Assembly (NCBI RefSeq): GCF_032191835.1 | Contig: NW_026800229.1 | Coordinates: 310,001 to 374,000 of the forward strand | Origin: Heteronotia binoei | Taxonomy: Eukaryota | DNA length: 64,000 bases | Direction: 5' to 3' | Shown: positions 11,901 to 58,730 of the stretch, one piece after another | Layout: the number at the start of each line of letters is the position of its first letter | Numbering within the stretch: the stretch's first letter is position 1 | Position numbers and translations under genes: made by a program | The notes under the pieces: generated by a model | Seen by the model: the letters and a program-made list of their open reading frames with translations, nothing else | What the model was told of the DNA's origin: nothing | Databases searched by the model: none

Positions 11901-12689
11901 GTCTCCTTTTCTAAGAATGATACAGTGTCTTTATTTTGTAGTAAATCCTCATTAATTCTCCATCTTCTTGATTTTCTTTGCAATTTTGTTGACCAGCATA
12001 TTGGATTATGGTCCGCCCAAACCTTTGGAAGAATCTCAATTTTTTTTTGTTATGAGGCCCAAGCCTTGGGAACCCCACAACATGTCAATTCTGGAAAAAG
12101 AATTATGCCTTGCTGAGAAAAATGTATAGTCTCTTACCTCAGGGTTGAACTTTCTCCAAATGTCTTCTAGATTTTCCTGTTTAATCAACTCAAAGAAAGA
12201 ATTGGGCAGCTTCCCTTTTTTATCATTCTTCTTTGGACTTGATCTGTCAAGGTTATTTTGTATTGTCCCATTAAAATCGCCCATCATCAATACCTGGTCA
12301 TAAGTCTCTTCGTCCATTTGTCTATTTATGTCTTTAAAGAATTTGTCTTTCGCTCCATTGGGTGCATAGAGTCCTAGTAGTAACGTTTTTTTCGCCTCTA
12401 TCGTCACCTCAACAGCAATGTATCTTCCTTCTTTGTCCTTAAAGATTAATTTTGGGTCAAGTTGTTCTTTAATGTAAAAAACCACCCCTCTTTTCTTTTG
12501 CTCTGCTAGTGAAAAAAATTCCAACCCCAAATTTCTATTCCACAAAAATTTACTGTCCTTGCGTTGTATATGAACTTCCTGTAAACAAATTATATTACAT
12601 TTTTGCTTTTTAATCCAATGAAATGTTCTCCTTCTTTTCTGTGGTGAATTTAGTCCATTTATATTCCAAGATAGTAATTTGTACTCCAT
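8942..12689 (-). pseudogene. L1 ORF2 (APE endonuclease, RT, CCHC knuckle) split by one extra A in an A9 run at 12040-12048
   Basis: APE motifs SWNINGLN, LQEVH, YAPN, GDFN, SRID, and WADH after the frameshift. RT motifs QGCPLSP and FADD. CWKCKKHEGSFFHMWWTC knuckle. Removing one base gives 1248 aa. Confidence 0.9.
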
Positions 12690-15726: not shown

Positions 15727-16659
15727 ATGGCAGAAGTCAACCTCACCCTCTTCCAGCCTGCCACGTTCCACCTCACCGGCTTCCCGGGCCTGGAGCGTCT
15801 CCACCCCTGGATCTCCATCCCTTTCTGTGCCTTGTACTTCTCCTCCATCCTGGGGAACTGCACCATTCTCCTCATTGTCCGGCGGGACCGGCGCCTGCAC
15901 GAGCCCATGTATTTCTTCCTGTGCATGCTGTCCCTGAACGACCTGGGCGTCTCCCTCTCCACCCTCCCCACCGTGCTGCCCCTCTTCTGCTTCGGCCTCA
16001 GCGAGGTGGCCTTCGACGCCTGCCTGGCCCAGATGTTCTTCATCCACTCCTTCTCCTTCATGGAATCCGGGATCCTGCTGGCCATGGCCTTTGACCGCTT
16101 CGTGGCCATCTGCAACCCACTGCACTACTCCTCCACGCTGACCACCCCCCGTATCTCCCGGATCGGGCTGGCTGTTGTCCTGAAGAGCACCGCCATGCTC
16201 TTCCCTTTCCCCTTCCTCATCAAGCGCTTGCCCATCTGCCGCTCCAACCTCCTCTCCCACGCCTACTGCCTCCACCCGGACATGATGCGGCTGGCCTGCG
16301 CCGACATCACCGTCAACAACATCTACGGCTTCTTCGCGGTCCTCTTCACCTACGGCCTGGACTCCACCTTCATCGTTTTGTCCTACCTCATGATTCTGAA
16401 GGCCGTCTTGAACATCGCCTCCCGGGAGCAGCGCCACAAGGCCCTCAACACCTGCGTCTCCCACATCTGCGCCGTCTTGACCTTCTACGTCCCCATCATT
16501 GCCGTCTCTGTCCTGCACAGGTTTGGGAAAAGCGCCCCTCCTGTGGTGCACATCATGATGTCCAACATCTACCTCTTTGTGCCTCCCTTGCTGAACCCCG
16601 TCATCTACAGCGTCAAAACCAAGGAGATCCGGAAGAGAATCTTCAGAAAGTTTGTCTGA
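15727..16659 (+). CDS. Class I olfactory receptor, OR51-like (310 aa), receptor 1
   Basis: N-glycan site NLT, TFHLTGFPG, LHEPMYFFL, MAFDRFVAICNPLHY, HAYCLHPD, KALNTCVSHICAV, HRFG, PPLLNPVIYSVKT. True ATG at 15727. Confidence 0.95.
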   Translation: MAEVNLTLFQPATFHLTGFPGLERLHPWISIPFCALYFSSILGNCTILLIVRRDRRLHEPMYFFLCMLSLNDLGVSLSTLPTVLPLFCFGLSEVAFDACLAQMFFIHSFSFMESGILLAMAFDRFVAICNPLHYSSTLTTPRISRIGLAVVLKSTAMLFPFPFLIKRLPICRSNLLSHAYCLHPDMMRLACADITVNNIYGFFAVLFTYGLDSTFIVLSYLMILKAVLNIASREQRHKALNTCVSHICAVLTFYVPIIAVSVLHRFGKSAPPVVHIMMSNIYLFVPPLLNPVIYSVKTKEIRKRIFRKFV

Positions 16660-25815: not shown

Positions 25816-25962
25816 CTAATTGGCCTGTGGCAAGTTCCTGGTTGGTCCCCAAGGGCCCTCTGGCTCCGGGCACAAATGCGTCCTCCTGCAGGGGGGAGGC
25901 CTGGCCTTGTCCCCCCCCCCATCACTGAGCAGGAAGGACGAGAGATGTCGGCAGTGGTGAGT
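25816..25962 (+). promoter_or_regulatory. Candidate upstream exon end for receptor 2 (CTAATTG homeodomain-type site; ATG TCG GCA GTG | GTGAGT donor)
   Basis: Conserved in copy B (36235-36384). Consensus donor in phase 0 with the receptor acceptor at 30386. Confidence 0.45.
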
Positions 25963-26218
25963 GAGGAGGGCAGACAGCAGGCAGCACCAGCATTTGGGCA
26001 CTGGGCCTAACAGGAGTCCTGGGTGGGAAGGAATCCGTGCGGGGGGGGGGGGATTGGGAGGGACCCTGCGGCAGACCCAAAGTTGCCTGAGGTGGGAAGG
26101 GGGGCGGGGCTCATTCTTTGCCTTGGGAAAGACGCCTTTCCGCAGCACTCTCTCTCTCTGTCTCCTCTGTTATTTGCAAAATACTTGGTTTTGCATGCAA
26201 GAACACAATAAAACATTC

Positions 26219-26409
26219 AGGCTTTCTACAGGCTGCGATCCAAATCAGAGAGGCTTTTACTCATGCATAGCTCACAGCTATTTTATGTCATTTAACTTTT
26301 GCTGGTTTTTTTTAAGGTTTTATTATATTCTATAGTGTTACTGTTGGTTTTAAAGTATACTGTATTCTTATATTAATGCCAATAAAGGTCTATGGTATGG
26401 TGTGGGTTT
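26219..26409 (+). mobile_element. Short LINE-like 3' insertion specific to copy A
   Basis: 13-bp TSD CAATAAAACATTC (26206-26218, 26410-26422). Single copy at the empty site in B (36627-36639). (TATGG)n-like tail. Confidence 0.7.
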
Positions 26410-26639
26410 CAATAAAACATTCCGGTTTCATTGTTGTTGTTTTATTTAAATGATCTTATTTTCTGGTTTCCACTGTTGCTGTTGCTGGGTTTTTGGAAAA
26501 TTGCTCAGTTCCTCATATTTTCTTCCTGGTTTCAGTCTTATGGTGACAAATACTTCTCTAGATCCATTTTGATTCATTTTTTTAAGTTGGAAGGCGCCTC
26601 AGAAGCAGATCTGCAGAAAGTTCAGCTATAAATATATAT

Positions 26640-27080
26640 ATGGTGAGGGGTCTGGAGACCAAGTCCTGTGAAGAAAGGTTGAAGGAGCTGGGCATGTTTA
26701 GCCTGGAGAGGAGGCGGCTGAGAGGTGATAGGATCACCATCTTCAAGTCCTTGAAGGGCTGTCATATAGAGGATGGGGTGGAATTGTTTTCTGTGGCCCC
26801 AGAAGATAGGACCAGAACCAATGGGTTGAAATTAAATCAAAAGTGTTTCCGACTCAATATTAGGAAGAACTTCCTCACCGTTAGAGCGATTCCTCAGTGG
26901 AACAGGCTTCCTTGGAAGGTGGTGGGCTCTCCTTCCTTGGAGGTTTTTAAACAGAGGCTGGATGGCCATTTGACAGTGATGAAGATCCTGTGAATTTGGG
27001 GTAGGTATTTGTGGGTTTCCTGCATTGTGCAGGGGGTTGGACTAGATGACCCTGGAGGTCTCTTCCAACTCTATGATATA
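26640..27080 (+). mobile_element. CR1 3' fragment (second CR1 family)
   Basis: Translation [19 protein letters not shown]...NIRKNFLTVRAIPQWNRLP. End CCAACTCTATGAT. Confidence 0.85.
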
Positions 27081-27697
27081 TTTAAATAGAACTTTTACAC
27101 TGAAAGGCAGCCGTCATAAAATTTGGTGCAGTGTTTTATAGAGACCTAAGAGTGATAGAAGCAGGGGTCGTTCTGTAGAAAAACAGGTGGTGGAGCTCAT
27201 TAGCATAACTCATTATCATATGCCCCCTCCACCAGCCAAAAGCAACCCAATGCAAGAAAGGAGAGTCCTGGGTGAACGAGGCCTGTTTGGGCTAGAGATT
27301 CAGCCAGTCTAAGCAGGCCTCGCTCTCCTGGGGCTCTCCTTGGCCACCCCCCTCCCCGCAGTCAAAAGGCCAACAAGCCACCCACCACCCAAAATCACAT
27401 AAGAAGTGGAGAAAGGGTGGCAGGGGCTTCTCCAGGGGTACATGAGGGCTTCTGGGGGTGTGGCAAAGCCCCTGGTGGCTGGCTGGCTGCCCGCTCTCCT
27501 AATCCAGGGATTGTTATGCAGCTGCACCTCCTATTCAATGGACAAGGTAGGTAGGTGGGGAGGAGGGGAGGGCATCAGAAAGGTTCAGGAGCTGTGCTCC
27601 TGTGAGCTCCTGATGAATCTGAGGCCTGGATAGAAAGAAGTCTTTCTTCCCATTTCCTTTTTGTGCTGCCAAGTCACAGCTGACTTGTGGTGGTGAC

Positions 27698-27891
27698 CAG
27701 TTTTCCCTCTCAGCTGAGTGAGCGTGAGCTGGCTCACAGATTTTTAGCCTCCAGCTCACACATTTGTGCCTTCGCTCAGGAAGGAGGGCCCCAGAGCACA
27801 CTCATGGATGCAGGAGCTCACAGCTCTAAGGCCAGGAGCTCACAAAGGAGAATTTTTGCTCACAAGACTCTGCAGCTTAGAGGGAACATTG
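27698..27891. mobile_element. hAT-type MITE
   Basis: TIR CAGTTTTCCCTCTCAGCTG / CAGCTTAGAGGGAACATTG. TSD GTGGTGAC/GTGATGAC. Confidence 0.75.
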
Positions 27892-27899
27892 GTGATGAC

Positions 27900-28785
27900 C
27901 AGGGGCATAGCTAGGGCTTTAGGGGCCTGGCTGGCTGCCTATGGGGGCTGGGGGCCTATGTGTGTGCACGCCGCCAGAAACAGGATATGATGTCACTTCC
28001 GATGATGTCACTTCCGCAAGATGGCCACCACTTGCGAGGGAGCCCTGCTGGAAACAGGAAGTGATGGAGGTGGAGGTGGAAAGAAAGCAACTTCAACTTT
28101 AAATGTGTTCTCCGAGCTGGCCGATGGGGGGGGGGGGGGCTTTAAGAGCCACGCAATGTGTGCGAAAGAGCCAACATATCATATATATGTTTTAAACACC
28201 TGCAACGATGAAGGTTCCAGACCAAAATTCCGGCAGACTTGCGCAATGGCAGATCTACCGGCTGGCTGCGCCGGCAGGGCCAGAGAGACCGGCTCCGCGG
28301 TCGGGAGGCACCGGCGCCACAGCCACCCCCTCCCCGGCTCCCGCTCTATGACCTCGGCGGCCGGCAGCAGCGCAGGCCCCTTGCGCGCCGTGTGGAGCGC
28401 AGCAGCACGCTCCCCGGGCTGCCTCGCCGGAGGCAAGGACCAGCTTGCCCTAGCAACTGGCGGCGCCTCCTTGTGGCGCGCAGGGCAGGGCAGGGAGGCC
28501 CTTGGGCTCGCAGGCGGGCGGAGAGAGCCCCCCTGTTGGAGCTGTGCAGCATGGCCCCAGCAGCCGCCCGCCTCGGCCCCGGCTGCCTCCGGCGCTAGGC
28601 AGCGGCGGCGCCCAGCTCCTCTCCTCGCCTATGATCGCCAGCATGAACGTGGCGCTCCAGGATCTCGGTAGCAACGTGAGTGGCGGCGGCGGGGTCGCCA
28701 GGCAGCCGGCTTCTGAGGGGCCCCTTGGCATTGCCAAGGGGCCCCCCAGACCTGGGGCGACCCGCCCCCCCTCCCTACACCACTG
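27900..28785. mobile_element. 886-bp non-autonomous hAT-type element with CpG-rich interior
   Basis: TIR CAGGGGCATAG / CTACACCACTG. Perfect TSD GTGATGAC (27892-27899, 28786-28793). Confidence 0.8.
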
Positions 28786-29829
28786 GTGATGACTCTGTGG
28801 GGTTTTCTAAGGCAAGAGAGGAGCAGAGGTGGTTTTCCATTGCCGTCTCTGCATAGCAACCCTGGACTTCCGCCTTGGTGGTCTCCCATCCAAGTCCTCA
28901 CCAGTGCCGACTTTGCTCAGCTTCCGAGAACTGCTGGGTTTGGGATCTCCAGGCCATGGGTCCTTTTCTAATATCACTTGGTTGAGCTTAAAAACACCTT
29001 GTACCTCTCAAACAGAAGTCTGTGAGAATTCATTTTATCCAAGCTATCCCTCCCCTTCTGAAATAGAGATCTCCATTGTCTGGGAAGAAGAACTCTCAAC
29101 ATGGTTCCAGTGTGGGTGAGGGGAAGAATGTCGGAGGGGTTTAGCTGTTTCCTGTCGGCTCGTAGACAAAGGTTGTTGTGGGATATTCAGAACCAGCCTC
29201 TTTGCTCTTCTCCTGCCCTTTCAAGCAGCCCATTTGGGGATGGAGGAGGCAGCACCCACAGGCTAGTCCGATCCCATTAAATTTGAATGATGCAGAATTG
29301 ACTGTTAAAAGCAGAAGTCATTCCATAGAAAAAGAGGTGCCAGAACTCATTAGCATAGCTCATTTGCATATGCCACACCCCCTGACATCATTGGAAGGTG
29401 CACTAAATTATATCAGCTCATCAGCATCTATCTTAAAATGCTTCTTGAATTAGAATGGTTATCATAAAACCTGACTCCCAGCCAGTGTTCCCTCCGAGCT
29501 GAGTTAGCGTGAGCTAGCTCACAGATTTTTAACTTCCAGTTCACACAATTTTGTCTTCAGGAAGAATGACCCCAGATCTCCTTTGCGGCCACAGTGGCAT
29601 GAGGAAGATTTCCATCTGTCTGCTTTAGATGTTTTGGTTATTTCCCCATTTTTTTGTGGGGGAAACTACTAGAAAGTTTGTCATACCTTAGAGTGCAGCC
29701 AAATCCTGCGATGTCCTCATGCTTTCCGTTGTCTGATCCACTTTTCATAAGAACAGATTGGGGATCCAAACCCCGTCACAGAAACACCATAATCGCAGCA
29801 CGTGTGATGCTCACAGCAGTTGTTATACA

Positions 29830-30303
29830 CAGTGGTGTCAAACTCATTTGTTATGAGGGCCGGATCTGACATAAATGAGACCTTGAGGGGCCGGGCCATG
29901 TCGGGTTGGGCCAAGCTATATGTGCACCTATTTAAGATTAGGTAGCAGAGATATAAACTTTATAAAGAACACACACAAACACAAATATATATATTTTTTA
30001 AAAATTTAAAATGTTAGCACTCATTGGTGTTAAAGATCTTTCTTTGTATTTCTGCCATGGGATCCAGGGAACTGGGCAAAGGAAACTGTGGCTCTTTCCT
30101 TCCTTCCACAGGGGACCAGGAAGGGGAGGAGCCTCAGCCAATGGAGAAAACAGAGGTTTTGCTCTGCAGCTCCTGTGTGATTGAGCAAGCCATGCAAAGC
30201 AAGCTGTGATGCAAAAGGAAGCAAGAGAGGGAGAAGGAAGCAGTTGACAACCAGTTGCTTGGGGGCCTGATTCAGCCCCCGGACTGCATGTTTGGCACCC
30301 CTG
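29830..30303. mobile_element. hAT-type MITE specific to copy A, ~85 bp upstream of the receptor 2 acceptor
   Basis: TIR CAGTGGTGTCAAAC / GTTTGGCACCCCTG. TSD GTTATACA / (G)TTATAGA. Empty site GTTATACAGGATC in B (~40693). Confidence 0.8.
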
Positions 30304-30386
30304 TTATAGAGGATCAAACCATCCGTCCCTACCCCCCCACACACCCCCTCAGCTCCAGGATTAACGGACACTTTCTGTATCTGCAG

Positions 30387-31355
30387 GTGGTAACTGGGAG
30401 AACGTCCCACTTCTCAACGCCACTTGAGAACCTCAGCTTTGTCTCTCCCACCTTCCTCTTGTCGGGCTTCCCAGGCCTGGAAGACAAAGGCGTCTGGGTA
30501 GCCATCCCTTTCTGCTCCCTGTATGCAGCCGCCATCTTGGGGAACTGCATGGTCGTCCTTGTGATCGTGATGGTCCCAAGCCTCCACAAACCCATGTACT
30601 TTTTCCTCTCCATGCTGGCGGTGACAGAACTGGGGGTGTCCATATCTACGTTCCCCACAGTGCTGAGTGTCTTCCTGTTGGATGCCAGAGAGATTGGGAT
30701 GGATGCCTGTCTCTTCCAGATGTTCTTCATCCACTCCTTTTCCATCATGGACTCAGGAGTCCTCTGGGCCATGGCCTTTGACCGCTTCGTAGCCATCTAC
30801 AACCCCCTGCAGTACACCACTGTCCTGACCAACTCCAGGATCGCCATGATAGGTTTGGGGATTGCTGTGAGGAGCATCGTCCTGATGGCCCCCATACCTA
30901 TTCTCCTCAGGAGGCTGCCATTTTGTAGACCTAACCTGCTAGCTCATCCCTACTGTTTGCACCCAAATTTAATCCGGCTTCCTTGTGCCGACATCACAGT
31001 GAACAGCAGATATGGTTTGTTTGTTGTACTCTCCACTTTTGGACTTGATTTCCTCTTTATTGTCCTCTCCTACATTCTGATAGCCAAGACGGTGCTGGGC
31101 CTGGCCTCCAAGGAAGGGCGTCTGAAGGCCCTCAACCCCTGCATCTCCCACATCTGTGCCGTGGTTGTGTACTACACACCCATGATCGGCGTCTCCATGG
31201 CACATCGTTTTGGCAAGCACGCGTCTCCCCTTCTGCACACCCTCATGGCCCATATCTACCTCCTGGTCCCCCCAGTCCTGAACCCCCTCATCTACAGCAT
31301 CAAGACCAGGGAGATCCGCCACGCCCTCCACCAGTTTTTCTTTCAGAAGTCCTAA
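30387..31355 (+). CDS. Class I olfactory receptor, OR51-like, receptor 2; paralogous ATG is ACG (30417), frame otherwise intact
   Basis: LHKPMYFFL, MAFDRFVAIYNPLQY, HPYCLHPN, SHICAV, HRFG, PPVLNPLIYSIKT. No stop or frameshift. The start given is the first base after the acceptor CTGCAG (30386). Could be a pseudogene if no upstream ATG is spliced in. Confidence 0.75.
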   Translation: MVTGRTSHFSTPLENLSFVSPTFLLSGFPGLEDKGVWVAIPFCSLYAAAILGNCMVVLVIVMVPSLHKPMYFFLSMLAVTELGVSISTFPTVLSVFLLDAREIGMDACLFQMFFIHSFSIMDSGVLWAMAFDRFVAIYNPLQYTTVLTNSRIAMIGLGIAVRSIVLMAPIPILLRRLPFCRPNLLAHPYCLHPNLIRLPCADITVNSRYGLFVVLSTFGLDFLFIVLSYILIAKTVLGLASKEGRLKALNPCISHICAVVVYYTPMIGVSMAHRFGKHASPLLHTLMAHIYLLVPPVLNPLIYSIKTREIRHALHQFFFQKS

Positions 31356-35852: not shown

Positions 35853-36857
35853 CTGATGGGGCCGCACATTTCAGAAGCCCCAGCAGACAATGTGCTCCTT
35901 TGCCTTCTTCCATCTTCCTCCCCGCCCCCCCCAGTGCCCCCCAGGATCTGGAGCACTGAGCCACAACTCTGGGGCCTGCATGCTTCCTTATGGCCAGACG
36001 CAAACATGGCTCAGCTGGGAGAAGGGCAAGAGAACCACACATCTTACGTCATACACACCATGGTGCGTTGTGGTGGTTTCCATAACCTCACTCCTTGCCA
36101 CACTTCAAATTAGCTGAGCACCCTGGCTCTCTTGTCAGGGGCAAGCGCTCCCCCAGAGAACAGGTGTCTTTTGGCCCCAGGTGTCTCTCCCCTTGATGGC
36201 CACCCCCCCCCCCCGCTGTCATCAGCTCAGCCAGCTAATTGGCCTGTGGCAGGTTCCTGGTTGGTCCCCAAGGGCCCTCTGGCTCCGGGCACAAATGCCG
36301 CCTCCTGCAGGGGGAGGCCTGGCCTTGTCTCTCCCCCCCCCCATCACTGAGCAGGAAGGACGAGAGATGTCGGCAGTGGTGAGTGAGGAGGGCAGACAGC
36401 AGGCAGCACCAGCCTTTGGGCACTGGGCCTCACAGGAGTCCTGGGTGGGAAGGAACCCGTGCGGGGGGGGGGATTGGGAGGGACCCTGCGGCAGACCCAA
36501 AGTTGCCTGAGGTGGGAAGGGGGGGCGGGGCTCATTCTTTGCCTTGGGAAAGACGCCTTTCCGCAGCACTCTCTCTCTCTGTCTCCTCTGTTATTTGCAA
36601 AATACTTGGTTTTGCATGCAAGAACACAATAAAACATTCCGGTTGCATTGGTGTTTTTTTTTAAATGATCTTATTTTCTGGTTCCCACTGTTGCTGAGTG
36701 TTTGGAAAATTGCTCAGCTCATTATTATTATTTTCTTGCTGGCTTCAGTCTTATGGTGACAAATACTTCTCTAGATCCATCTTGATATCATTTTTTTTAA
36801 GTTGGAAGGCGCCTCAGAAGCAGATCTGCAGAAAGTTCAGCTGTAAATATATATACG

Positions 36858-37640
36858 GTGAGGGGTCTGGAGAAAAAGTCCTATGGAGAAAGGTTGAAGG
36901 AGCTGGGGATGTTTAGCCTGGAGAGGAGGTGGCTGAGAGGTGATAGGATCACCATCTTCAAGTCCTTGAAGGGATGTCCTAGAGAGGATGGGGTGGAATT
37001 GTTTTCTGTGGACCCAGAAGGTAGGACTAGAACTAGTGGGTTGAAATTAAATCAAAAGAGTTTCCGGCTCAACATTTGGAAGAACTTCCTGACTGTAAGA
37101 GCAATTCCTCAGTGTAACAGGCTTCCTCTGTTATTTGCAAAAGAGAGCCAGTTTGGTGTAGTGGGAGAGCCAGTTTGGTGTAGTGGTTAAGTGTGCGGAC
37201 TCTTATCTGGGAGAACCGGGTTTGATTCCCCACTCCTCCACTTGCACCTGCTAGCATGGCCTTGGGTCAGCCATAGCTGTGGCAGAAGTTGTCCTTGAAA
37301 GGGCAGCTGCTGTGAGAGCCCTCTCAGCCCCATCCACCTCACAGGGTGTCTGTTGTGGGGGAGGAAGGTAAAGGAGATTGTGAGCCGCTCTGAGACTCTT
37401 TGGAGTGGAGGGCGGGATATAAATCCAATATCTTCTTCTTCTTCTTCTTCTTCTTCCTCCTTGGGAGGTGGTGGGCTCTCCTTTCTTGGAGGTTTTTAAG
37501 CAGAGGCTGGAGGGCCATCTGACAGCAAGGCGGATCCTGTGAATTTAGGGGGGGAGGGCAGTATTTGTGAATTTCCCTCATTGTGCAGGGGGTTGGACTA
37601 GATGACCCTGGAGATCTCTTCCAACTCTAGGATTCTATGA
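36858..37640 (+). mobile_element. CR1 3' fragment (paralog of 26640) interrupted by a SINE
   Basis: Same CR1 translation as 26640-27080, split at ~37127. Confidence 0.8.
37143..37456 (+). mobile_element. Full-length Squam3-like SINE (parent structure of the 79-bp arrays), B-specific
   Basis: A box TGGTGTAGTGG, B-box variant GGTTTGATTCC, 22-bp head duplication, (CTT)n tail. Confidence 0.85.
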
Positions 37641-38969
37641 TATATTTAAATAGAACTTTTACACTGAAAGGCAGCTGTCATAAAATTTGGTGCAGTGTTT
37701 TATAAAGAGACCTAAGAGTGATAGAAGCAGGGGTCGTTCTGTAGAAAAACAGGTGGTGGAGCTCATTAGCTTAACTCATTATCATATGCTCCCTGCACCT
37801 GCCAAAAGCAACCCAATGCAAGAGAGGAGAGTCTCGGGTGAGCGAGGCCTGCTTGCGCTAGAGATCCAGCCGGCCTAAGCAGGCCTCGCTCTCCTGGGGC
37901 TCTCCTTGGCCACCCCCCTCCCCGCAGTCAAAAGGCCAACAAGCCACCCAGCACCCAAAATCACATAAGAAGTGGAGAAAGAGTGGCCTGGGCTTCTCTA
38001 GGGGTACATGAGGGCTGCTGGGGGTGTGGCAGAGCCCCTGGTGGCTGGCTGGCTGCCCGCTCTCCTAATCCAGGGATTGTTATGCAGCTGCACCTCCTAT
38101 TCAATGGACAAGGTAGGTAGGTGGGGAGGAGGGGAGGGCATCAGAAAGGTTCAGGAGCTGTGCTCCTGTGAGCTCCTGATGAATCTGAGGCCTGGATAGA
38201 AAGAAGTCTTTCTTCCCATTTCCTTTTTGTGCTGCCAAGTCACAGCTGACTTGTGGTGGTGACCAGTTTTCCCTCTCAGCTGAGTGAGCGTGAGCTGGCT
38301 CACAGATTTTTAGCCTCCAGCTCACACATTTGTGTCTTCGCTCAGGAAGGAGGGCCCCAGAGCACACTCATGGATGCAGGAGCTCACAGCTCTAAGGCCA
38401 GGAGCTCACAAAGGAGAATTTTTGCTCACAAGACTCTGCAGGTTGTTGTGGGATATTCAGAACCAGCCTCTTTGCTCTTCTGCTGCCCTTTCAAGCAGTC
38501 CATTTGGGGATGGAGGAGACATCACCAACAGGATAGTCCGATCCCATTGAGGGTTAAGGAGAGCCCTTTGAATTCCTCAGTCATGATCATGATTGTCTGT
38601 TAAAAGCAGGAGTCGTTTAAGAGAAAAAGAGGTGCCAGAGCTCATTAACACAACCCACTGCAAATGCCCCACATACCCCTGACATCACCTGAAGGTGGAC
38701 TAAATTCTATCAGCTCAGCATCTACTTCCAAATGCTTCTTGAACTAGAATTGTCATAACAAAACCTTCCTCCCGTCATACTTTTAAAATCACTTCCTCCT
38801 CGGTGGCCACAGTGGCAGGGTGAAGGTTTCCATCTGTCTGCTTTAGATGTTTTAGTTATTTCCCCATTTTTTGTGGGGAAAAACATTAGAAAGTTTGTCA
38901 GATCTTAGAGTGCAGCAAGATTATGACTATTATTATTTATTACATTTATGAATCGCATCATTCCGGCCA

Positions 38970-39165
38970 ATGGGGAGGGACGGTGGCTCAGTGGTAGAGC
39001 ATCTGCTTGGGAAGCAGAAGGTCCCAGTTCAATCCCCGGCATCTGCAAAAAACGGTCCAGGCAAATAGGTGTGAAAAACCTCAGCTTGAGAACCTGGCGA
39101 GAAGACAATACTGACTTTGATGGACCAAGGGTCTGATTCAGTATAAGGCAGTTTCATATGTTCAT
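38970..39165 (+). mobile_element. tRNA-derived SINE with CR1-like tail
   Basis: TGGCTCAGTGG A box, GTTCAATCC B box, tail GGTCTGATTCAGTATAAGGCAG. Relatives at 47255, 53925, 62705 and 62950. Confidence 0.7.
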
Positions 39166-39384
39166 ATAAGAACATAAGAACATAAGAGAAGCCATGTTGG
39201 ATCAGGCCAACGGCCCATCAAGTCCAACACTCTGTGTCACACAGTGGCAAAAAATTTTATATACACACATACACTGTGGCTAATAGCCACTGATGGACCC
39301 GTGCTCCATATTTTTATCTAAACCCTTCTTGAAGGTGGCTATACTTCTTCAATATATATGTTCAATCCTGGGCTCTAGGCGATG

Positions 39385-39418
<34 letters not shown>

Positions 39419-39529
39419 TTTTATTTGTGGTGGCGGCCATAAGCATAGACACCTTCAAGAGGGGTTTATATAAAAATATGGAGCAGAGGTCCATCAGTGG
39501 CTGTTAGCCACAGTGTGTGTGTGTGTGTT

Positions 39530-39895
39530 TTGGCCACTGTGTGACACAGAGTGTTGGACTGGATGGGTCATTGGCCATATCCAACATGGCTTCTCTTATG
39601 TTCTTATGTGACACAGAGTGTTGGACTGGAGGGGCCATTGGCCATATCCAACATGGCTTCTCTTATGTGACACAGAGCGTTGGAATGGAGGGGCCGTTGG
39701 CCTGATCCAACATGGCTTCTCGTATGTTCTTATGTGACACAGAGTGTTGGACTGGAGGGGCCATTGGCCTGATCCAAGAGGGCTTCTCTTATGTTCTTAT
39801 GTGACACAGAGTGTTGGACTGGAGGGGCCACTGGCCTGATCCAGCAGGCTTCTCTTATGTTCTTATGTGGCACAGAGTGTTGGACTGTAGGGGCC
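39530..39895 (+). repeat. 67-bp CR1 3'-end tandem array (~5 units)
   Basis: Repeats of GTGACACAGAGTGTTGGACTGGAGGGGCCATTGGCCTGATCCAACATGGCTTCTCTTATGTTCTTAT. Confidence 0.9.
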
Positions 39896-39960
39896 TGTGG
39901 AGTGTTGGACTGTAGAGAGAAGACATGACTGAGAGTTCTTAAGACAAAAACGAATTGTGG

Positions 39961-40495
39961 AAGAACATAAGAGAAGCCCTGTTGGATCAGGCCAATGGTC
40001 CCTCCAGTCCAACACTCTGTGTCACATAATAACATAAGAGAATCCCTGTTGGATCAGGCCAATGGCCCCTCCAGTCCAACACTCTGTGTCACAGAAGAAC
40101 ATAAGAGAAGTCCTGTTGGATCAGGCCAGTGGCCCATCCACTCCAACATCCTGTGTCACATAAGAACATAAGAGAAGCCCAGTTGGATCAGGCCAATGGT
40201 CCCTCCAGTCCAACCCTCTGTGTCACATAAGAACATAAGAGAAGCCCTGTTGGATCAGGCCAGTGGCCCCTCCAGTCCAACACTCTGTGTCACATAAGAA
40301 CATAAGAGAAGCCCTGTTGGATCAAGCCAATGGCCCCTCCAGTCCAACACTCTGTGTCACATAAGAACATAAGAGAAGACCTGTTGGATCAAGCCAACGG
40401 CCCCTCCAGTCCAACACTCTGTGTCACATAAGAACATAAGAGAAGCCCTATTGGATCAGGCCAATGGTCCCTCCAGTCCAACACTCTGTGTCACA
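39961..40495 (-). repeat. 67-bp CR1 3'-end tandem array (~8 units), inverted relative to 39530-39895
   Basis: Unit CATAAGAACATAAGAGAAGCCCTGTTGGATCAGGCCAGTGGCCCCTCCAGTCCAACACTCTGTGTCA. Period 67 (40226 to 40293). Confidence 0.92.
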
Positions 40496-40816
40496 CAAGG
40501 GCTAAAAAAGAACGGAGGTTCATAAGTAGGGCTAGAAGCCCTTCCACTTTCCCCACCCCCAAGCACCAAGAGGTTAAGGTTCAAGGCCTCAAAGGCCAAA
40601 ACCAAAATCCTGTGATGTCCTCATGCTTTCATTAATCTGATCCACTTCATAGAAACACCATCATTGCAGCAGGTGTGAGGCTCACAACGGTTGTTATACA
40701 GGATCAAATAATCCGTCCCAACCCCTCCCACCCCCCACCCCCTCAGCTCCAGGATTAACGGGCACTTTCTGTATCTGTATCCGCAGGTGGTAACTGGGAG
40801 AAAGTCTGACTTCTCA

Positions 40817-41740
40817 ATGCCACTTGAGAACCACAGCTTTATCTTGTCAGGCTTCCCAGGCCTGGAAGACAAAGGCGTCTGGGTAGCCATCCCTTTCTGC
40901 TCCCTGTATGCAGCTGCCATCTTGGGGAACTGCATGGTTGTCCTTGTGATCGTGATGGTCCCAAGCCTCCACAAACCCATGTACTTTTTCCTCTCCATGC
41001 TGGCGGTGACGGAACTGGGGGTGTCCATATCTACGTTCCCCACAGTGCTGAGTGTCTTCCTGTTGGATGCCAGAGAGATTGGGATGGATGCCTGCCTGGC
41101 CCAGATGTTCTTCATCCACTCCTTTTCCGTCATGGACTCAGGAGTCCTCTGGGCCATGGCCTTTGACCGCTTCGTAGCCATCTACACCCCCCTGCAGTAT
41201 GCCACCGTCCTGACCAACTCCAGGATCGCCATGATAGGTTTGGGGATTGCTGTGAGGAGCATCGTCCTGGTACCCCCCTTACCCATTCTCCTCAGGAGGC
41301 TGCCATTTTGTAGACCTAACCTGCTAGCTCATCCCTACTGTTTGCACCCAAATTTAATCCGGCTTCCTTGTGCCGACATCACAGTGAACAGCAGATATGG
41401 TTTGTTGGTCGTACTCTTCACTTTTGGACTTGATTTCCTCTTTATTGTCCTCTCCTACGTTCTGATAGCCAAGACGGTGCTGGGCCTGGCCTCCAAGGAA
41501 GGGCGTCTGAAGGCCCTCAACCCCTGCATCTCCCACATCTGTGCCGTGGTTGTGTATTACACACCCTTGATCGGCTTATCCATTGCACATCGTTTTGGCA
41601 AGCACGCTTCTCCTCTTCTGCACACCCTCATGGCCCATATCTACCTCCTGGTCCCCCCAGTCCTGAACCCCCTCATCTACAGCATCAAGACCAGGGAGAT
41701 CCGCCACGCCCTCCACCAGTTTTTCTTTCAGAAGTTCTAA
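40817..41740 (+). CDS. Class I olfactory receptor, OR51-like (307 aa from ATG 40817), receptor 3, duplicate of receptor 2
   Basis: NHS glycosylation site and the same OR motifs as receptor 2. In-frame acceptor CCGCAG at 40786. Confidence 0.93.
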   Translation: MPLENHSFILSGFPGLEDKGVWVAIPFCSLYAAAILGNCMVVLVIVMVPSLHKPMYFFLSMLAVTELGVSISTFPTVLSVFLLDAREIGMDACLAQMFFIHSFSVMDSGVLWAMAFDRFVAIYTPLQYATVLTNSRIAMIGLGIAVRSIVLVPPLPILLRRLPFCRPNLLAHPYCLHPNLIRLPCADITVNSRYGLLVVLFTFGLDFLFIVLSYVLIAKTVLGLASKEGRLKALNPCISHICAVVVYYTPLIGLSIAHRFGKHASPLLHTLMAHIYLLVPPVLNPLIYSIKTREIRHALHQFFFQKF

Positions 41741-47470: not shown

Positions 47471-47610
47471 ACCCTGCATCCTTAGTTTGCAGGGCTGGCC
47501 CTGGAGTGCTGGGCACCCTAGACAAGGCTAACTTCTGGGGCCCTGCCTGCATGGATAACATCACCAAATCACATGGGGGGCACCCAATTCGGCACCCCCA
47601 GAAAGCTGGC

Positions 47611-47920
47611 TCCCTAGGGAGTTACCTAGTTTGTCCAGTGGCAAAGACCAGCCTGCCGTCAGCTGCCCCAGAGACCCAGTGAGGCAAAGCAATTAGAAAA
47701 CCTCAGCTCTGTGCACATCAGGGCTTCCCCATGGCTCTCAGGAACACCTCTCTTGGGGCACGATCACACACAAAAGCTGCCAGGTGGGGTGCCGGGAATT
47801 TGCACATGGGGCGTTCTACATGAGGAAGACAGCTCAGCCGTGGCAGTTGAGGAAAGAAACCAGACTGCAAAGGGTTGCCGGCAACTGAGCTCACCGTTGC
47901 TGCCTGAGCGGGAGGTAATC
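47611..47920 (+). promoter_or_regulatory. Candidate receptor promoter and 5' exon (O/E site TCCCTAGGGA, homeodomain site CAATTAG, donor AG|GTAATC)
   Basis: Perfect EBF palindrome at 47611-47620, CTAATTG on the minus strand at 47690-47696, donor at 47915, all in non-repeat sequence upstream of receptor 4. Confidence 0.4.
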
Positions 47921-48732
47921 CTTGCTAGGGAACTGGGGAGGGGGTGGGCAATGACTGAGCCTTTGGTGGGAAGGAGAAGCCGGCCGGACAGGATGTGTGG
48001 AGTGGCCCAGGAGGAAATCCCTTTTCTCTTGCTTCAAGTGCCCCTTCCTTCTTTGACTGGTTTCAGACGTTGTTTGCATTAAAAATATTATCCCAACAAA
48101 ACAAGATAAGAAATGCAAATATTGTTAATCCATGTTTGAAATGCAAAAGGCCAGGGTAACCCTAGATAGCCCGATCTCATCCCATTACAGAAGCGAAGTA
48201 GGTGAGGAGGGAAGGGCAGGAACCAGAAAAATGTGGTCCCTTTCCTTTTGTGGCTCATGGTGTGCCCAATTCATGAACCATGAACTTTTTAGGTGCCAAA
48301 TGAACAAGGTTGGTTTGTGAGGTCTGTGGTGCAGTAGAACCCCCTCCCCCAGTGTGCTAGACACCAAACTCACTGGGGATCTCTGGCTACGTGCCTTCCA
48401 AGTTTGGGGGGACTGGAATCACTGGGTTCTAAGTTTTACCCCACCCCAAAGAAAGTGCCCCCTGGAAAGTGCTCTTGAGTAAAATCTCAGGTGCAGGTTC
48501 AAAAGTGCAAGCTACACACCCCAAAGGCACCTCTCTTTGCTGCCAGCTCCCCTACAGCCTCTCGCCTGTTGCTTTGAAGTTTGGTAGACTTTTTGATTGA
48601 GCAGAGACGGACTGAAAAGTTTGAGGAAAGTTCATACTGGTTGACTTGCCACAAAGGTCGGTTCATGAACTGGCCACAATTCATCATGAACTTCAGTTCG
48701 TGAGCCAGTCAGGCCCACCCCTAGTAGGAATA

Positions 48733-49395
48733 ATAGAATCTTAGAGTTGCAAGGGACCTCCAGGGTCATCTAGACTAACCCTCTGCACAATGCAGGGACC
48801 TCACAAATACTGCCCCCCCCCCCCAAGTTCCCAAGATCCACATTGCTGTCAGATGGCCATCCAGTTTCTGTTTAAAAACCTCCAAAGAAGGAGAGCCCAT
48901 CTCCTCCTGAGGAAGCCTGTTCCACTGAGGAATCACTCTAACGGTCAAGAAGTTCTTTCTAATGTTGAGCCAGAAACTCTTCTGATTTAATTTCAACCTA
49001 CCGGTTCTGGTCCTACCTTCTGGGGCCACAGAAAACAATTCCACACCATCCTCTATAGGACAGCCCTTCAAGTCCTTGAAGATGGTGATCCTATCACCTC
49101 TCAGCCACCTCCTCTCCAGGCTAAACATCCCCAGCTCCTTCAGCCTTTCCTCATAGGACTTGGCCTCCAGACCCCTCACCCTCTTCATCGCCCTCCTCTG
49201 GACTCGTTTCAGCTTGTCTAGATCCTTCTTAAAATGTGGTGCCCAAAACTGAGCACAATACTCTGGGTGAGGTCTTGCCAGAGCAGAGTAAAGCGATACC
49301 ATCACATCACGTGATCTGGACACTAGACTTCTGTTGATACAGCCCAAAATTGCATTTGCCTTTTTAGCCACCGCATCACACTGTTGGATGGGGTT
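48733..49395 (-). mobile_element. CR1 ORF2 3' fragment
   Basis: Translation [49 protein letters not shown]. Confidence 0.88.
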
Positions 49396-49609
49396 TGGAT
49401 GGGAGCCCAGCAACAAAGCTCAGGTTGAATATGCAGGTTGAAGGTTGGCGGTTTTAAACCCCCTTCTGAGGTCCATCAGTGAGTCCAGGGCACTAGAAGC
49501 CCTCCCACTGTTGCCCTCCCAAGCACCAAGAAGACAGAGCATCACTGCCCCAGACAAAGAGTTCCAACAATATGCTGTGACTATAGCCACTGATGGACCT
49601 CTGTTCCAT

Positions 49610-50420
49610 TAGGAAGAACTTCCTGACCATTAGTGCGGTTCCTCAGTGGAACAGGCTTCCTCCTCGGGAGGTGGTGGGCTCTCCTTCCTTGGGGGTTTTT
49701 AAGCAGAGGCTATGAATTAAGGATGCGGATCCTGTGAATTAAGCAGATCAAGAGAAGAAGGGTGAGAACTGTTGTATCAGTGCTGAGTTCTTGTGGCTCT
49801 TTCTTACACTCCCAGGGAAATGCTGATGGCCATTTTGGGGTCAGTCAGCAATTTTCTCCAGGCCAGTTTGGCCAGGGATCCTGGAGGGTTTTGTCATCTT
49901 CTGGGTGTGGAGCCTGCAAGGGTGTGTGTGTGTGTGGGGGAAGTTATTTGTGAAGTTCCTGCATTGTGTGGGGGGCTGAACTAGTTGACCCTGGAGGTCC
50001 CTTCCAGTTGTATGATTTTATATGATGTAGTGGTGAAGAGTGGTGAACTCTAATCTGTAGATCACATGAAGTGATGGTGTTGCTTTACTCTGCTCTGGTA
50101 AGACCTCACCTGGAGTCTTGTGTTCAGTTTTGGGCACCACATTTTAAGAAGGGTTTAGACAAGCTGGAACGGGTCCAGAGGAGTGCGACGAAGATGGTGA
50201 GGAGTCTGGAGACCAAGTCCTATGAGGAAAGGTTGAAGGAGCTGGGCATGTTTAGCCTGGAGAGGAGGCGGCTGAGAGGTGATAGGATCACCAAGTCCTT
50301 GATGGGCTGTCCTATAGAGGGGTCTGGAGACCAAGTCCTATGAGGAAAGGTTGAAGGAGCTGGGCATGTTTAGCCTGGAGAGGAGGCGGCTGAGAGGGGA
50401 TAGGATCACCATCTTCAAGT
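49610..50420 (+). mobile_element. CR1 fragments (3' end plus ORF2 piece with internal duplication)
   Basis: Translation [23 protein letters not shown]. The GAGACCAAGTCCTATGAGGAAAGG segment is duplicated. Confidence 0.75.
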
Positions 50421-50699
50421 ACTTGAAGGGCTCTCTCAGACATACCTGCCTCACAGGGTGTCTGTTGTGGGGAGAGGAAGGGAAGGAGATGGGAAGCCAC
50501 TCTGAGATTCCTTGAGGTAGAGAAAAGCAGGCAAAAAAACCCCACTCATCTCCTTCATGCTCAGGGATCTAGTGGCCCGCACCAAAGCATGCACTCAGTG
50601 GGGAAGGCCTGGGTTGATATACTGTCAGTGCAATCGACCTGTGAAGATTTATGAATGCAGTCAGCCCTGCACATCACTCATCCTGTACTCACCATACTC

Positions 50700-51080
50700 C
50701 AGGACAGTTTCTGGGAGAGCTCTCTCAGCCCCACCCACCTCACAGGGTGTCTGTTGTGGGGGGGAGAAGATATAGGAGATTGTGAGCCACTCTGTCTCTG
50801 TCTTTGAAAGGGCAGCTGCTGTGAGAGCCCTCTCCAGCCCCACCCACCTCACAGGGTTTGATTCCCCACTCCTCCACTTGCACCTGCTACCATGGCCTTG
50901 GGTCAGCCATAGCTCTGGCAGGAGTTGTCCTTAAAAGGGCAGCTGCTGTGAGAGCCCTCTCAGCCCCACCCACCTCACAGGGTGTCTGTTGTGGGGGAGG
51001 AAGGTAAAGGAGATTGTGAGCCGCTCTGAGACTCTTCGGAGTGGAAGCAGGATATAAATCCAATATCATCTTCTTCTTAG
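50700..51080 (+). mobile_element. Squam3-like SINE pieces
   Basis: Body and tail motifs CCCACCTCACAGGG...GATATAAATCCAATATC. Confidence 0.65.
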
Positions 51081-51158
51081 AGAAAGCATTTGTCTCTTTA
51101 AATCATTTCTCCAAGCCAAGCCATCCAGAGTCTTGGTGAATACATTTTAAGTTAAAAG

Positions 51159-52592
51159 TTGCTTTCTTTCCACCTCTCCCCACATCTATTTGCTTTCTTT
51201 CCACCTCTCCCCCCATCTATTTGCTTTCTTTCCACCTCTCCCCACATCTATTTGCTTTCTTTCCACCTCTCCCCCCATCTATTTGCTTTCTTTCCACCTC
51301 TCCCCCATCTATTTGCTTTCTTTCCACCTCTCCCCCATCTATTTGCTTTCTTTCCACCTCTCCCCTCATCTATTTGCTTTCTTTCCACTTCTCCCCACAT
51401 CTATTTGCTTTCTTTCCACCTCTCCCCTCATCTATTTGCTTTCTTTCCACCTCTCCCCACATCTATTTGCTTTCTTTCCACCTCTCCCCCCATCTATTTG
51501 CTTTCTTTCCACCTCTCCCCTCATCTATTTGCTTTCTTTCCACCTCTCCCCTCATCTATTTGCTTTCTTTCCACCTCTCCCCCCATCTATTTGCTTTCTT
51601 TCCACCTCTCCCCCCATCTATTTGCTTTCTTTCCACCTCTCCCCTCATCTATTTGCTTTCTTTCCACCTCTCCCCCCATCTATTTGCTTTCTTTCCACCT
51701 CTCCCCCATCTATTTGCTTTCTTTCCACCTCTTCCCTCATCTATTTGCTTTCTTTCCACTTCTCCCCCCATCTATTTGCTTTCTTTCCACCTCTCCCCCC
51801 ATCTATTTGCTTTCTTTCCACCTCTCCCCTCATCTATTTGCTTTCTTTCCACCTCTCCCCCCATCTATTTGCTTTCTTTCCACCTCTCCCCCATCTATTT
51901 GCTTTCTTTCCACCTCTCCCCTCATCTATTTGCTTTCTTTCCACCTCTCCCCCCATCTTTTTGCTTTCTTTCCACCTCTCCCCACATCTATTTGCTTTCT
52001 TTCCACCTCTCCCCCCATCTATTTGCTTTCTTTCCACCTCTCCCCACATCTATTTGCTTTCTTTCCACCTCTCCCCCATCTATTTGCTTTCTTTCCACCT
52101 CTCCCCCCATCTTTTTGCTTTCTTTCCACCTCTCCCCACATCTATTTGCTTTCTTTCCACCTCTCCCCCCATCTATTTGCTTTCTTTCCACCTCTCCCCA
52201 CATCTATTTGCTTTCTTTCCACCTCTCCCCCATCTATTTGCTTTCTTTCCACCTCTCCCCTCATCTATTTGCTTTCTTTCCACCTCTCCCCACATCTATT
52301 TGCTTTCTTTCCACCTCTCCCCCATCTATTTGCTTTCTTTCCACCTCTCCCCCCATCTTTTTGCTTTCTTTCCACCTCTCCCCCCATCTATTTGCTTTCT
52401 TTCCACCTCTCCCCCATCTATTTGCTTTCTTTCCACCTCTCCCCCATCTATTTGCTTTCTTTCCACCTCTCCCCTCATCTATTTGCTTTCTTTCCACCTC
52501 TCCCCACATCTATTTGCTTTCTTTCCACCTCTCCCCACATCTATTTGCTTTCTTTCCACCTCTCCCCCCATCTATTTGCTTTCTTTCCACCT
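51159..52592 (+). repeat. 30-31-bp pyrimidine-rich minisatellite (~46 units)
   Basis: Unit TTTGCTTTCTTTCCACCTCTCCCCCCATCTA, varying mainly in the C tract. Confidence 0.97.
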
Positions 52593-52742
52593 ACATACTT
52601 TCCTTCATTCTTTCCTGTCTTGTGGCTCTCCAGCATTTGACATTTATTCCACGTGGCTCTTAAAATTAGCCTGTTTGGCCATCCCTGCTCCAGGATCACC
52701 GCTGATGTGCTCCTTGTGTTTTTATTTCCATGCAGGTCCTGC

Positions 52743-53708
52743 ATGGAGAATGTCTGTCTTCATGGAGCCCCTCAGAACCAGAGCTCTGTTCCTCCCATGT
52801 TCATCTTGACCGGCATCCCAGGATTAGAAGAAAGGAGCAACTGGGTCGCCACCCTCTTCTGCTCCCTGTACTTCCTGGCCATCTTGGGAAACAGCCTCAT
52901 TCTCCTTGTGGTTGCAAAGGAGCAAGGTCTCCACAAGCCCATGTACCTTTTCCTCTCCATGCTGGCGCTGAGTGAGCTGGGCATCTCTCTCTCCTCTGCT
53001 CCAACGGTCCTGAACCTCTTCCTCTTTGACGTCAGGGAGATCGGGATCAATGCCTGCCTGGCCCAGATGTTCTTCATCCACTCTTTCTCCATCATGGACT
53101 CAGGAGTCCTCTGGGCCATGGCCTTTGACCGTTTCGTAGCCATCTACAACCCCCTGCAGTACGCCGCCATCCTGACAAACTCTCGGGTCGTTATGATAGG
53201 TTTGGTGGTTGCTGCAAGGAGCGTCGTCCTAATGATACCTCTGCCTGTCCTTCTGCGGGGGCTGCCCTTCTGCAGGCCCAACGTCCTGGCTCACCCCTTC
53301 TGCTTACACTCCAATTTAATCCGTTTTCCGTGTGCTGACATCACAGTGAACAGCCGATGTGGTCTGTTTGTTGTGCTCTCTACTTTTGGGCTCGATTCGT
53401 TATGTATTGTCCTCTCCTACATCATGATCCTCAAGACGGTGCTGGGCATGGCTTCGAAAGAAGGGCGTCTGAAGGCACTCAACACCTGCGTCTCCCACAT
53501 CTGTGCCGTGGTGGTGTACTACGTCCCGATGATCGGCGTCTCCATGGCACATCGTTTTGGCAAGCACGCTTCTCCCCTTCTGCACTCCCTCATGGCCAAC
53601 ATCTACCTCCTGGTCCCCCCAGTCCTGAACCCCATCATCTACAGCATAAAGACCAAAGAGATCCGCAAGGCTTTCAGGAAGCTCTTCTCTCTGAAAAGTT
53701 CTTTGTAA
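52743..53708 (+). CDS. Class I olfactory receptor, OR51-like (321 aa), receptor 4
   Basis: ATG 7 nt after the acceptor TGCAG (52735). NQS, LHKPMYLFL, MAFDRFVAIYNPLQY, KALNTCVSHICAV, HRFG, PPVLNPIIYSIKT. Confidence 0.94.
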   Translation: MENVCLHGAPQNQSSVPPMFILTGIPGLEERSNWVATLFCSLYFLAILGNSLILLVVAKEQGLHKPMYLFLSMLALSELGISLSSAPTVLNLFLFDVREIGINACLAQMFFIHSFSIMDSGVLWAMAFDRFVAIYNPLQYAAILTNSRVVMIGLVVAARSVVLMIPLPVLLRGLPFCRPNVLAHPFCLHSNLIRFPCADITVNSRCGLFVVLSTFGLDSLCIVLSYIMILKTVLGMASKEGRLKALNTCVSHICAVVVYYVPMIGVSMAHRFGKHASPLLHSLMANIYLLVPPVLNPIIYSIKTKEIRKAFRKLFSLKSSL

Positions 53709-53924
53709 GGGAAAAGTAGACTAGTTTCACACTGGGCCTGTTCTGGGTGGAGAGCCCTTTTGCTCCTGGCACTTCTCTCCATTTTCACACAAGCTGCCCC
53801 GGAGCTGCAAGTTGGCACACCACTTTCCCACAGCAAGCAAGATCCTCTTACAAGCAATTTCAGCTTGCTGTGGGAGAGTGGCATACCAACTTACAGCTCC
53901 ATGGCGGGGACAGTGGAGGAGGGA

Positions 53925-54205
53925 TGGTGGCTCAGTGGTAGAGCATCTGCTTGGTAAGCAGAAGATCGTAGGTTCAATCCCCAGCATCTCCAACTCAAAA
54001 GGGTCCAGGCAAATAGGTGTGAAAACGTCAGCTTAAGACCCTAGAGAGCCATGAGTGGGGCTGTGGCTCAGTGGTAGAGCATCTCCTTGGTAAGCAGAAG
54101 GTCCCAGGTCCAATCCCCGGCATCTCCAACTAAAAAGGGTCCAGGCAAGTAGGCGTGAAAAACCTCAGCTGGAGACCCTGGAGAGCCGTTGCCAGTCTGA
54201 GGAGA
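53925..54205 (+). mobile_element. Tandem pair of tRNA-derived SINE heads
   Basis: Two TGGCTCAGTGGTAGAGCATC heads (~53927, ~54063). Confidence 0.7.
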
Positions 54206-54209
54206 CAAG

Positions 54210-58600: not shown

Positions 58601-58713
58601 AGTGGAAACATTTCCCTTCTAGTGAAAATGAATGAGTTGCAGAAAAAGATGTACTAGCATCTGATCTAATCCATAAATTTCACAGAAAACACCCTCTGAG
58701 ACCGAGGGGTTGA
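55629..58713 (+). pseudogene. Decayed Ty3/Gypsy chromovirus pol (RT, RNase H, integrase, chromodomain)
   Basis: RT motifs LRLCTDFR, KLDLRDAY and YLDD. RNase H motifs CDVSDVSVGAIL and WTDHKNL. Integrase HHCC, SMDFI, SDRGPQF, with DGQTKR in place of DGQTER. Chromodomain EVQEILDSK...YLIKWK. Frameshifts, stops and an ~80-bp insert at 56207-56286. Confidence 0.92.
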
Positions 58714-58730
58714 GCTTGAGGGGGGCAGTA

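Follow-up and report, generated by a model that had tools for sequence, protein, structure and literature searches.

Olfactory receptor (OR) genes with a coding sequence (CDS) split over two exons have been curated in mammals, 41 in mouse and 13 in human (Barnes et al. 2020, PMC7055050). In one class of these the main coding exon has no start codon and regains one from an upstream exon, for example in Olfr1174-ps, Olfr1175-ps and Olfr1177-ps, and the introns of split ORs, located in the N-terminal region, average 3.4–3.8 kb (PMC7055050). The criteria for split ORs were RNA-seq support together with a conserved junction and a conserved start methionine, and in-frame upstream ATGs (uATGs) were reported for 13.6% of ORs in human and 21.5% in mouse (PMC7055050). 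Here, a stretch of 64,000 nucleotides (nt) from the gecko Heteronotia binoei (contig JAVQKZ010000210.1, about 310001–374000, free of any N), hereafter called the window, was analysed with respect to two duplicate class I receptor genes, R2 and R3, and the short leader exon predicted upstream of each. The leader exon is conserved among gecko genera and in Heteronotia carries an ATG in frame with the receptor. Our leading, though tentative, reading is that the start codon has moved into the leader exon and that R2 would depend on the leader AUG.

Four class I OR51-like receptor genes (R1 to R4) were found in the window, all on the forward strand and all with a Pfam 7tm_4 match (E about 1e-117 to 1e-121); for R2 and R3 the match spans the full length, with E = 9e-120 and 1e-116. 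In the protein search, the best matches of the receptors were gecko proteins named 'olfactory receptor 51I2-like'. R2 and R3, both OR51I2-like and of class I, are the products of one tandem duplication, and the aligned non-coding blocks of the two copies are 4.8% diverged. The motifs PMYFFL, MAFDRF and NP..Y and the N-terminal NxS site are present in both. R2 and R3 have four changes in common at sites that do not vary among 23 other lizard sequences. Three of the changes are conservative, and the fourth alters KALNTC.SH from Thr to Pro, giving KALNPC at the start of transmembrane segment (TM) 6 (31112–31130 in R2 and 41497–41515 in R3), where the Thr is invariant in the 23 other lizard homologues.

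An earlier note on this DNA had proposed that R2, taken as a copy without its ATG, is rescued by an ATG on an upstream exon, and its description of the locus was reproduced. R2 has ACG at 30417–30419 where R3 has ATG at 40817–40819, and the R2 frame is otherwise intact and open to the stop at 31353–31355. The 21-mer GAGATGTCGGCAGTGGTGAGT, which comprises the MSAV segment and the donor, occurs exactly twice, at 25942–25962 and 36364–36384; with the leader ATG at 25945–25947 and 36367–36369, both mini-exons translate to MSAV, followed by a donor GT at 25957 and 36379. The acceptors, cag/GTG GTA ACT (a slash marks the junction), lie at 30386/30387 and 40786/40787, in frame with the receptors. Counted exon by exon, the frame of R2 amounts to 4 + 322 = 326 codons, inside the 300–350 aa (amino acids) asked of a split-CDS OR (PMC7055050), with the predicted intron in phase 0 and within the N-terminal domain. 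The R2 coding exon itself holds no in-frame ATG before TM1, the first being at 30549, and no other ATG was found in the window sequence between the TATA-like box and 25945.

Judged from the H. binoei genome only, this leader-exon pattern is not beyond chance, because the two copies go back to one tandem duplication and are not independent, and because the 10 kb before R2 contain three distinct perfect GTRAGT donors that follow an in-frame, stop-free, phase-0 ATG (22170, 25956 and 28675). The identity of the 21-mer between copy A (R2) and copy B (R3) carries no weight either, since over 21 nt the two copies should differ at only about 1 position. In the sequences compared, it is conservation across species that sets the donor at 25956 apart from the other two.

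For this comparison, homologue DNA was taken from Gekko japonicus (P0002, on L001), Paroedura picta (P0009 and P0007, on L002) and Eublepharis macularius (P0006, on L003). Both window copies agree with Gekko (L001 5526) and with three Paroedura paralogues at every base of the donor 13-mer CAGTGGTGAGTGA. Written as CAGTG/GTGAGTGA, the donor is shared by the window copies, Gekko and the three Paroedura loci, and reads CAGCG/GTGAGTG in Eublepharis. In six out of six cases there is one leader homologue per coding exon in the same orientation, at a distance of 4.4 kb in Gekko, 1.8 and 2.9 kb in Paroedura and 3.8 kb in Eublepharis. The acceptor GCAG/GTG is invariant in seven squamate sequences, with a pyrimidine tract and a branch-point-like element (TTAAC or TTGAC) ahead of it. 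Leader exon, donor, intron (about 4.4 kb in R2 and R3) and acceptor are thus kept one per gene in four gecko genera, as the proposed exon-intron structure had implied, and the upstream segment is well supported by these alignments as a real, conserved 5' leader exon. Between the duplicates, the promoter, exon 1 and the first 265 intron nt together show 7 mismatches in 431 positions, against 5.2% in the other non-coding blocks (P = 1e-4). The start of the intron (25957–26163, about 200 nt) is 1.5% diverged between the duplicates and about 71% identical to Gekko, which suggests a regulatory element in the first ~200 nt of the leader intron, downstream of the promoter. A Paroedura gene that runs off L002 was also checked as a possible split-CDS precedent, and no OR exon was found in the DNA covered.

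Upstream of the leader ATG lies a block made up of a homeodomain-type site, an O/E (EBF)-like site and a TATA-like box, which is conserved across geckos and supports a promoter reading. The homeodomain-type motif CTAATTG is situated 129 bp before the leader ATG in both copies. In an OR promoter, O/E and homeodomain sites would be expected within about 200 bp of the transcription start; both motifs are present and conserved here, although the O/E-like site matches the V$NOLF core TCCCyngrgar (PMC3247239) only in part. The arrangement described for mammalian OR promoters agrees with the gecko block (PMC3247239). At the TATA-like box, the block GGTACAAATGCC is conserved in Gekko, Paroedura and Eublepharis. 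From the TATA-like box, transcription would be expected to start ~30 nt downstream, near 25900.

The history of the start codons was then read from the same alignments. In five of five non-Heteronotia sequences, a canonical ATG in the context GGGAGA-ATG stands 15 nt after the GCAG/GTG acceptor. Compared with these, the canonical ATG is lost in both R2 and R3. The ACG of R2 at 30417 had been taken for a lost ATG; this has to be corrected, as ACG is ancestral there (Gekko japonicus also has ACG) and it is the ATG of R3 at 40817–40819 that is new, by this polarisation a derived C-to-T change at a CpG. R3 is annotated from this derived ATG, with 307 aa. At the position of the leader ATG, Gekko and one Paroedura locus have ACG, the other two Paroedura loci have ACA or GCA, and Eublepharis has no equivalent, which makes the leader ATG, on the sequences compared, a Heteronotia-specific CpG transition. 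The earlier note had asked for conservation of ATG, donor and phase in orthologues and had named non-conservation of the ATG or of the phase as grounds for giving up the idea. Donor and phase geometry stood, and Gekko has the same spacing between the ACG or ATG codon and the donor, as well as between the acceptor and the canonical ATG; the leader ATG, one half of that condition, is not conserved.

The leaders of the other geckos contain a different uATG (in the context CATGAAG, or GCGATGG in Eublepharis), which is missing in Heteronotia. Translation from the CATGAAG uATG would be out of frame and would meet a TGA just past or straddling the junction, and the Eublepharis upstream open reading frame (uORF) stops inside exon 1. 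These uATGs are located at L001 5507–5531, L002 13990–14009 and 19745–19763, and L003 6139–6157, and the conserved gecko leader uORF may act as a translational control element. Some database proteins begin with 'MQ' (P0005, P0009, P0014), and these N-termini were considered as a coding extension. They were discarded, because in the single-exon model their ATG directly adjoins the acceptor (ATGCAG/GTG) and the canonical ATG comes 15 nt further on. An example of such an 'MQV...' start ATG within an acceptor is found at L002 10001–10006. The 'MQV...' N-termini in databases probably include intronic codons, and from the position of the canonical ATG the real start is likely the one 15 nt downstream.

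Taken together, these comparisons can be arranged as follows. In the other geckos the gene has a promoter, a short non-coding leader with an out-of-frame or terminated uORF, and a start ATG 15 nt past the acceptor. On the way to Heteronotia, this older uATG, out of frame with the receptor, would have been lost, the leader ACG would have become ATG at a CpG, 12 nt before the donor and at a position already in the receptor frame, and the canonical ATG would have been lost in both copies; R3 would later have gained its private in-exon ATG. If transcription starts near 25900, the leader AUG at 25945 would be the first AUG of the predicted mRNA and would have G at -3, so that ribosome scanning should start an N-terminally extended receptor there, from both genes. 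The predicted products have 4 + 322 codons in R2 and 4 + 317 codons in R3, and in R3 leaky scanning to its own ATG would also be possible. ORs tolerate short N-terminal extensions in heterologous expression, as tagged receptors do. The loss of the canonical ATG in both copies would be easier to grasp if another start was already in use. A more far-reaching form of this reading, to which we give somewhat less credence, is that a relocation of the start codon has been caught in progress: with an in-frame leader AUG the canonical AUG would have become dispensable and been lost in both duplicates, a single-exon OR would have turned into a split-CDS gene without insertion of an intron, and R2 would be the better-conserved working copy.

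Constraint on R2 and R3 was estimated from Nei-Gojobori counts, and changes were assigned to the two lineages by parsimony with Gekko, Paroedura and Eublepharis as outgroups, not by a likelihood branch model. From the NxS site onward, the two copies show 15 synonymous (Sd) and 18 non-synonymous (Nd) differences, corresponding to a synonymous rate (dS) of 0.071, a non-synonymous rate (dN) of 0.027 and a ratio dN/dS (omega) of 0.38 (p = 0.007 against neutrality). On the R2 lineage, 5 non-synonymous and 7 synonymous changes give an omega of about 0.23 (p = 0.012, or 0.039 if the share of synonymous sites is set higher), and on the R3 lineage 12 and 6 give about 0.65, where p against neutrality is not significant. 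The suggestion that R2 may still be functional, for which dN/dS had been named as a check, agrees with this lineage omega and with the lack of any stop or frameshift; neither mark of a pseudogene, a disrupted frame or an omega of about 1, was seen in R2, in what is a small sample. From the density of indels in non-coding DNA, 4.6–5.4 would be expected in the two CDSs; the only one present is an in-frame event in R3 (P of no frameshift 0.03–0.05). This is a 15-nt deletion relative to R2 about 30441–30455, by which five conserved N-terminal residues before TM1 are gone. On these small numbers, the copy without an in-exon ATG looks better conserved than R3. R3 had been treated as the intact reference; it carries the 15-nt deletion, a 6-nt insertion in the pyrimidine tract and about twice the non-synonymous changes of R2, and, as far as these counts go, may be a copy that is relaxing or changing function.

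Several findings weigh against a start that has moved into the leader, and some of them suit the main rival account, which we think possible though rather doubtful: R2 would be a recently inactivated, start-lost, unprocessed pseudogene whose leader is non-coding with an ordinary in-frame uATG, and R3 would be the working copy by way of 40817. The leader ATG is lineage-specific, common only to the sister duplicate and not to the other gecko genera, so that of the features asked for in PMC7055050 the conserved junction is present at R2 and the conserved start methionine of Barnes et al. is absent beyond the sister duplicate. The in-frame geometry is older than the leader ATG, and the in-frame state is therefore no evidence of selection. 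The arrangement in R3 is ordinary, because in-frame uATGs are frequent in mammalian ORs (13.6–21.5%). R2 is without an in-exon ATG before TM1, and both copies share the Thr-to-Pro change in KALNTC. A recent change from ATG to ACG in R2 would in any case leave the frame intact and dN/dS low, and as to its timing, parsimony does not distinguish a single loss that preceded the duplication from two separate ones. The R2 branch carries only 12 substitutions, with p weakening to 0.04 at a realistic synonymous share. Between the acceptor and the R3 ATG (10 codons), R2 and R3 differ at 4 of 30 nt, so that no constraint is visible on the extension, and the low divergence around the promoter could stem from gene conversion. 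A Logan contig (P0038, L006) was considered as RNA evidence for the junction and discarded, as it contains intron sequence and is genomic. What speaks for R2 and not for a pseudogene is that dN/dS is lower on its branch (about 0.23) and its ancestral N-terminus is retained, compared with about 0.65 and a 5-codon deletion in R3, that the canonical ATG is gone from both copies, and that the promoter block of R2 is kept as well as that of R3.

Three other starts can be considered for R2. Translation could begin at the near-cognate ACG 30402–30404, yielding a receptor of normal length at low efficiency. This ACG lies exactly at the canonical start, with A at -3 in the conserved GGGAGA context, and ACG can act as a weak non-AUG start codon; however, the leader AUG, if part of the mRNA, lies upstream in the same frame and would take most scanning ribosomes, and with AAG at the canonical position R3 has no usable near-cognate, which leaves this start improbable. 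We consider it very improbable that an unspliced or alternatively started transcript is translated from the ATG at 30288–30290 as a 355-aa open reading frame (ORF). The frame is indeed open from 30255, but the corresponding stretch of R3 is closed by a TAA at 40709, homology to the other geckos ends about 35 nt before the acceptor, and 38 unconserved residues would be added.

The remaining candidate is the start in the public annotation. R2 had been expected to be called a pseudogene by single-exon pipelines, which is not the case: RefSeq already has it as a 312-aa protein with a two-exon CDS (XP_060119866.1) that begins with MEEA and continues with the residues from the NxS site. The CDS range maps to 29240–31355 (position 2001 of L005 being window 29240). 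That R2 in fact starts at the ATG 29240, with 29251 spliced to 30429, agrees with this CDS, but we find it hardly credible. The first bases of the intron would be GCACCC, which make a poor donor of the GC type; copy B offers no equivalent of the mini-exon, whose motif has a single match in the window; the acceptor conserved in every gecko would be bypassed; and the protein would lose the residues that directly precede the NxS site. On these grounds the unconvincing MEEA mini-exon was rejected as the true first coding exon, and it is probably an ab initio artefact. Rescue of R2 by the leader ATG is plausible but unproven, and R2 is a possible further split-CDS OR.

Table 1. Positions of the receptor genes and of the predicted leader, intron, promoter and start-codon features in the window.
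Feature	Position	Strand	Remarks
R1	about 15730–16659	+	class I OR51-like
R2 homeodomain-type site CTAATTG (promoter)	25816–25822	+	identical in Eublepharis (L003 about 6008); Gekko japonicus differs at one position
R3 homeodomain-type site CTAATTG (promoter)	36235–36241	+	copy-B equivalent
O/E (EBF)-like site GGTCCCCAAGGGCC	25844–25857 (R2), 36263–36276 (R3)	+	kept in all aligned gecko leaders; predicted binding
TATA-like box GCACAAATGC	25870–25879 (R2), 36289–36298 (R3)	+	predicts transcription start near 25900
R2 predicted leader exon 1	25900–25956	+	5' end uncertain; ATG 25945–25947 (MSAV); donor GTG/GTGAGT at 25956/25957
R3 predicted leader exon 1	36320–36378	+	5' end uncertain; ATG 36367–36369; donor at 36378/36379
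R2 predicted intron	25957–30386	+	4,430 nt; branch-point-like TTAAC, pyrimidine tract and AG in last ~35 nt
R3 predicted intron	36379–40786	+	4,408 nt; 6-nt insertion in pyrimidine tract
RefSeq mini-exon MEEA	29240–29251	+	joined to internal acceptor 30428/30429 via GC..AG intron, donor GCACCC
In-frame ATG in 3' part of R2 intron	30288–30290	+	355-aa single-exon ORF if intron retained
Canonical gecko start codon position	30402–30404 (R2), 40802–40804 (R3)	+	ACG in R2, AAG in R3
R2 coding exon	30387–31355	+	322 codons + TAA; open from acceptor onward; 7tm_4 E = 9e-120
R3 coding exon	40787–41740	+	annotated start is the derived ATG 40817 (P0001, 307 aa)
R4	about 52743–53708	+	class I OR51-like

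Some observations concern the neighbouring genes. A second contig of the same assembly (L004, JAVQKZ010000157.1, 37 kb) is about 96% identical to window 47593–62861 and carries paralogues of R4 and of the next gene (P0015, P0019). This contig represents a divergent haplotig or else a segmental duplication, and was ruled out as an independent copy of R2/R3, as it covers only the equivalent of window 47.6–62.9 kb. Directly before R4 lies a tandem repeat (51159–52640) in which three phases each give a long open frame, and downstream of R4 Ty3/gypsy-like retroelement ORFs (reverse transcriptase, RNase H and integrase) occupy 55427–58165. In the RefSeq isoform X2 of R1 (P0124, starting MFSFFSVVNL), the first coding exon, placed in the window by pattern match at 12623–12652, comes from the antisense strand of a full-length L1. 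Its donor is weak (TTA/GTCCAT), and it is joined to an acceptor at 15756/15757 within the coding exon of R1, so that the usual N-terminus is replaced.

If the start of R2 has moved into the leader, counts of intact OR genes versus pseudogenes in squamates would be biased wherever they are based on single-exon ORF calling, and the RefSeq patch for R2 would also be wrong. The locus would then offer a concrete, stepwise route to split OR genes, of which the mammalian surveys gave the outcome and could not reconstruct the path, and it would be the first case argued in a reptile for the origin of a split CDS. If R2 is not translated from the leader, it would be a young pseudogene beside an ordinary OR promoter, and the gains would be the gecko leader and promoter block and the corrected start-codon history.

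Compared with the known systems, R2 resembles the mammalian split-CDS ORs in having no in-exon ATG and in an upstream-exon ATG that restores a frame of about 320–326 aa, as well as in the position of its 4.4 kb intron, within their range of lengths, in the extracellular N-terminal region. The mammalian cases have junction RNA-seq and a conserved methionine, whereas R2 is known from DNA comparison, with the methionine found only in the sister duplicate. It also differs in being a reptile class I receptor, and in an origin that can be read as the gain of a uATG and the loss of the canonical ATG across a pre-existing intron of the 5' untranslated region, with no intron insertion. With ordinary ORs that have non-coding 5' exons, R2 shares the O/E and homeodomain promoter, a short leader with an ATG, and a last intron of a few kb near the start codon; unlike ordinary uATG-bearing ORs, it has no downstream in-exon ATG, so that the uATG would be its sole AUG start. 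The gecko orthologues (Gekko P0002, the Paroedura P0007 locus and Eublepharis P0006) are 79–85% identical at the protein level and have the same leader donor, acceptor and promoter block, but in contrast to R2 and R3 they keep the canonical ATG and have a leader ACG at the MSAV position, together with another uATG that is out of frame or terminated.

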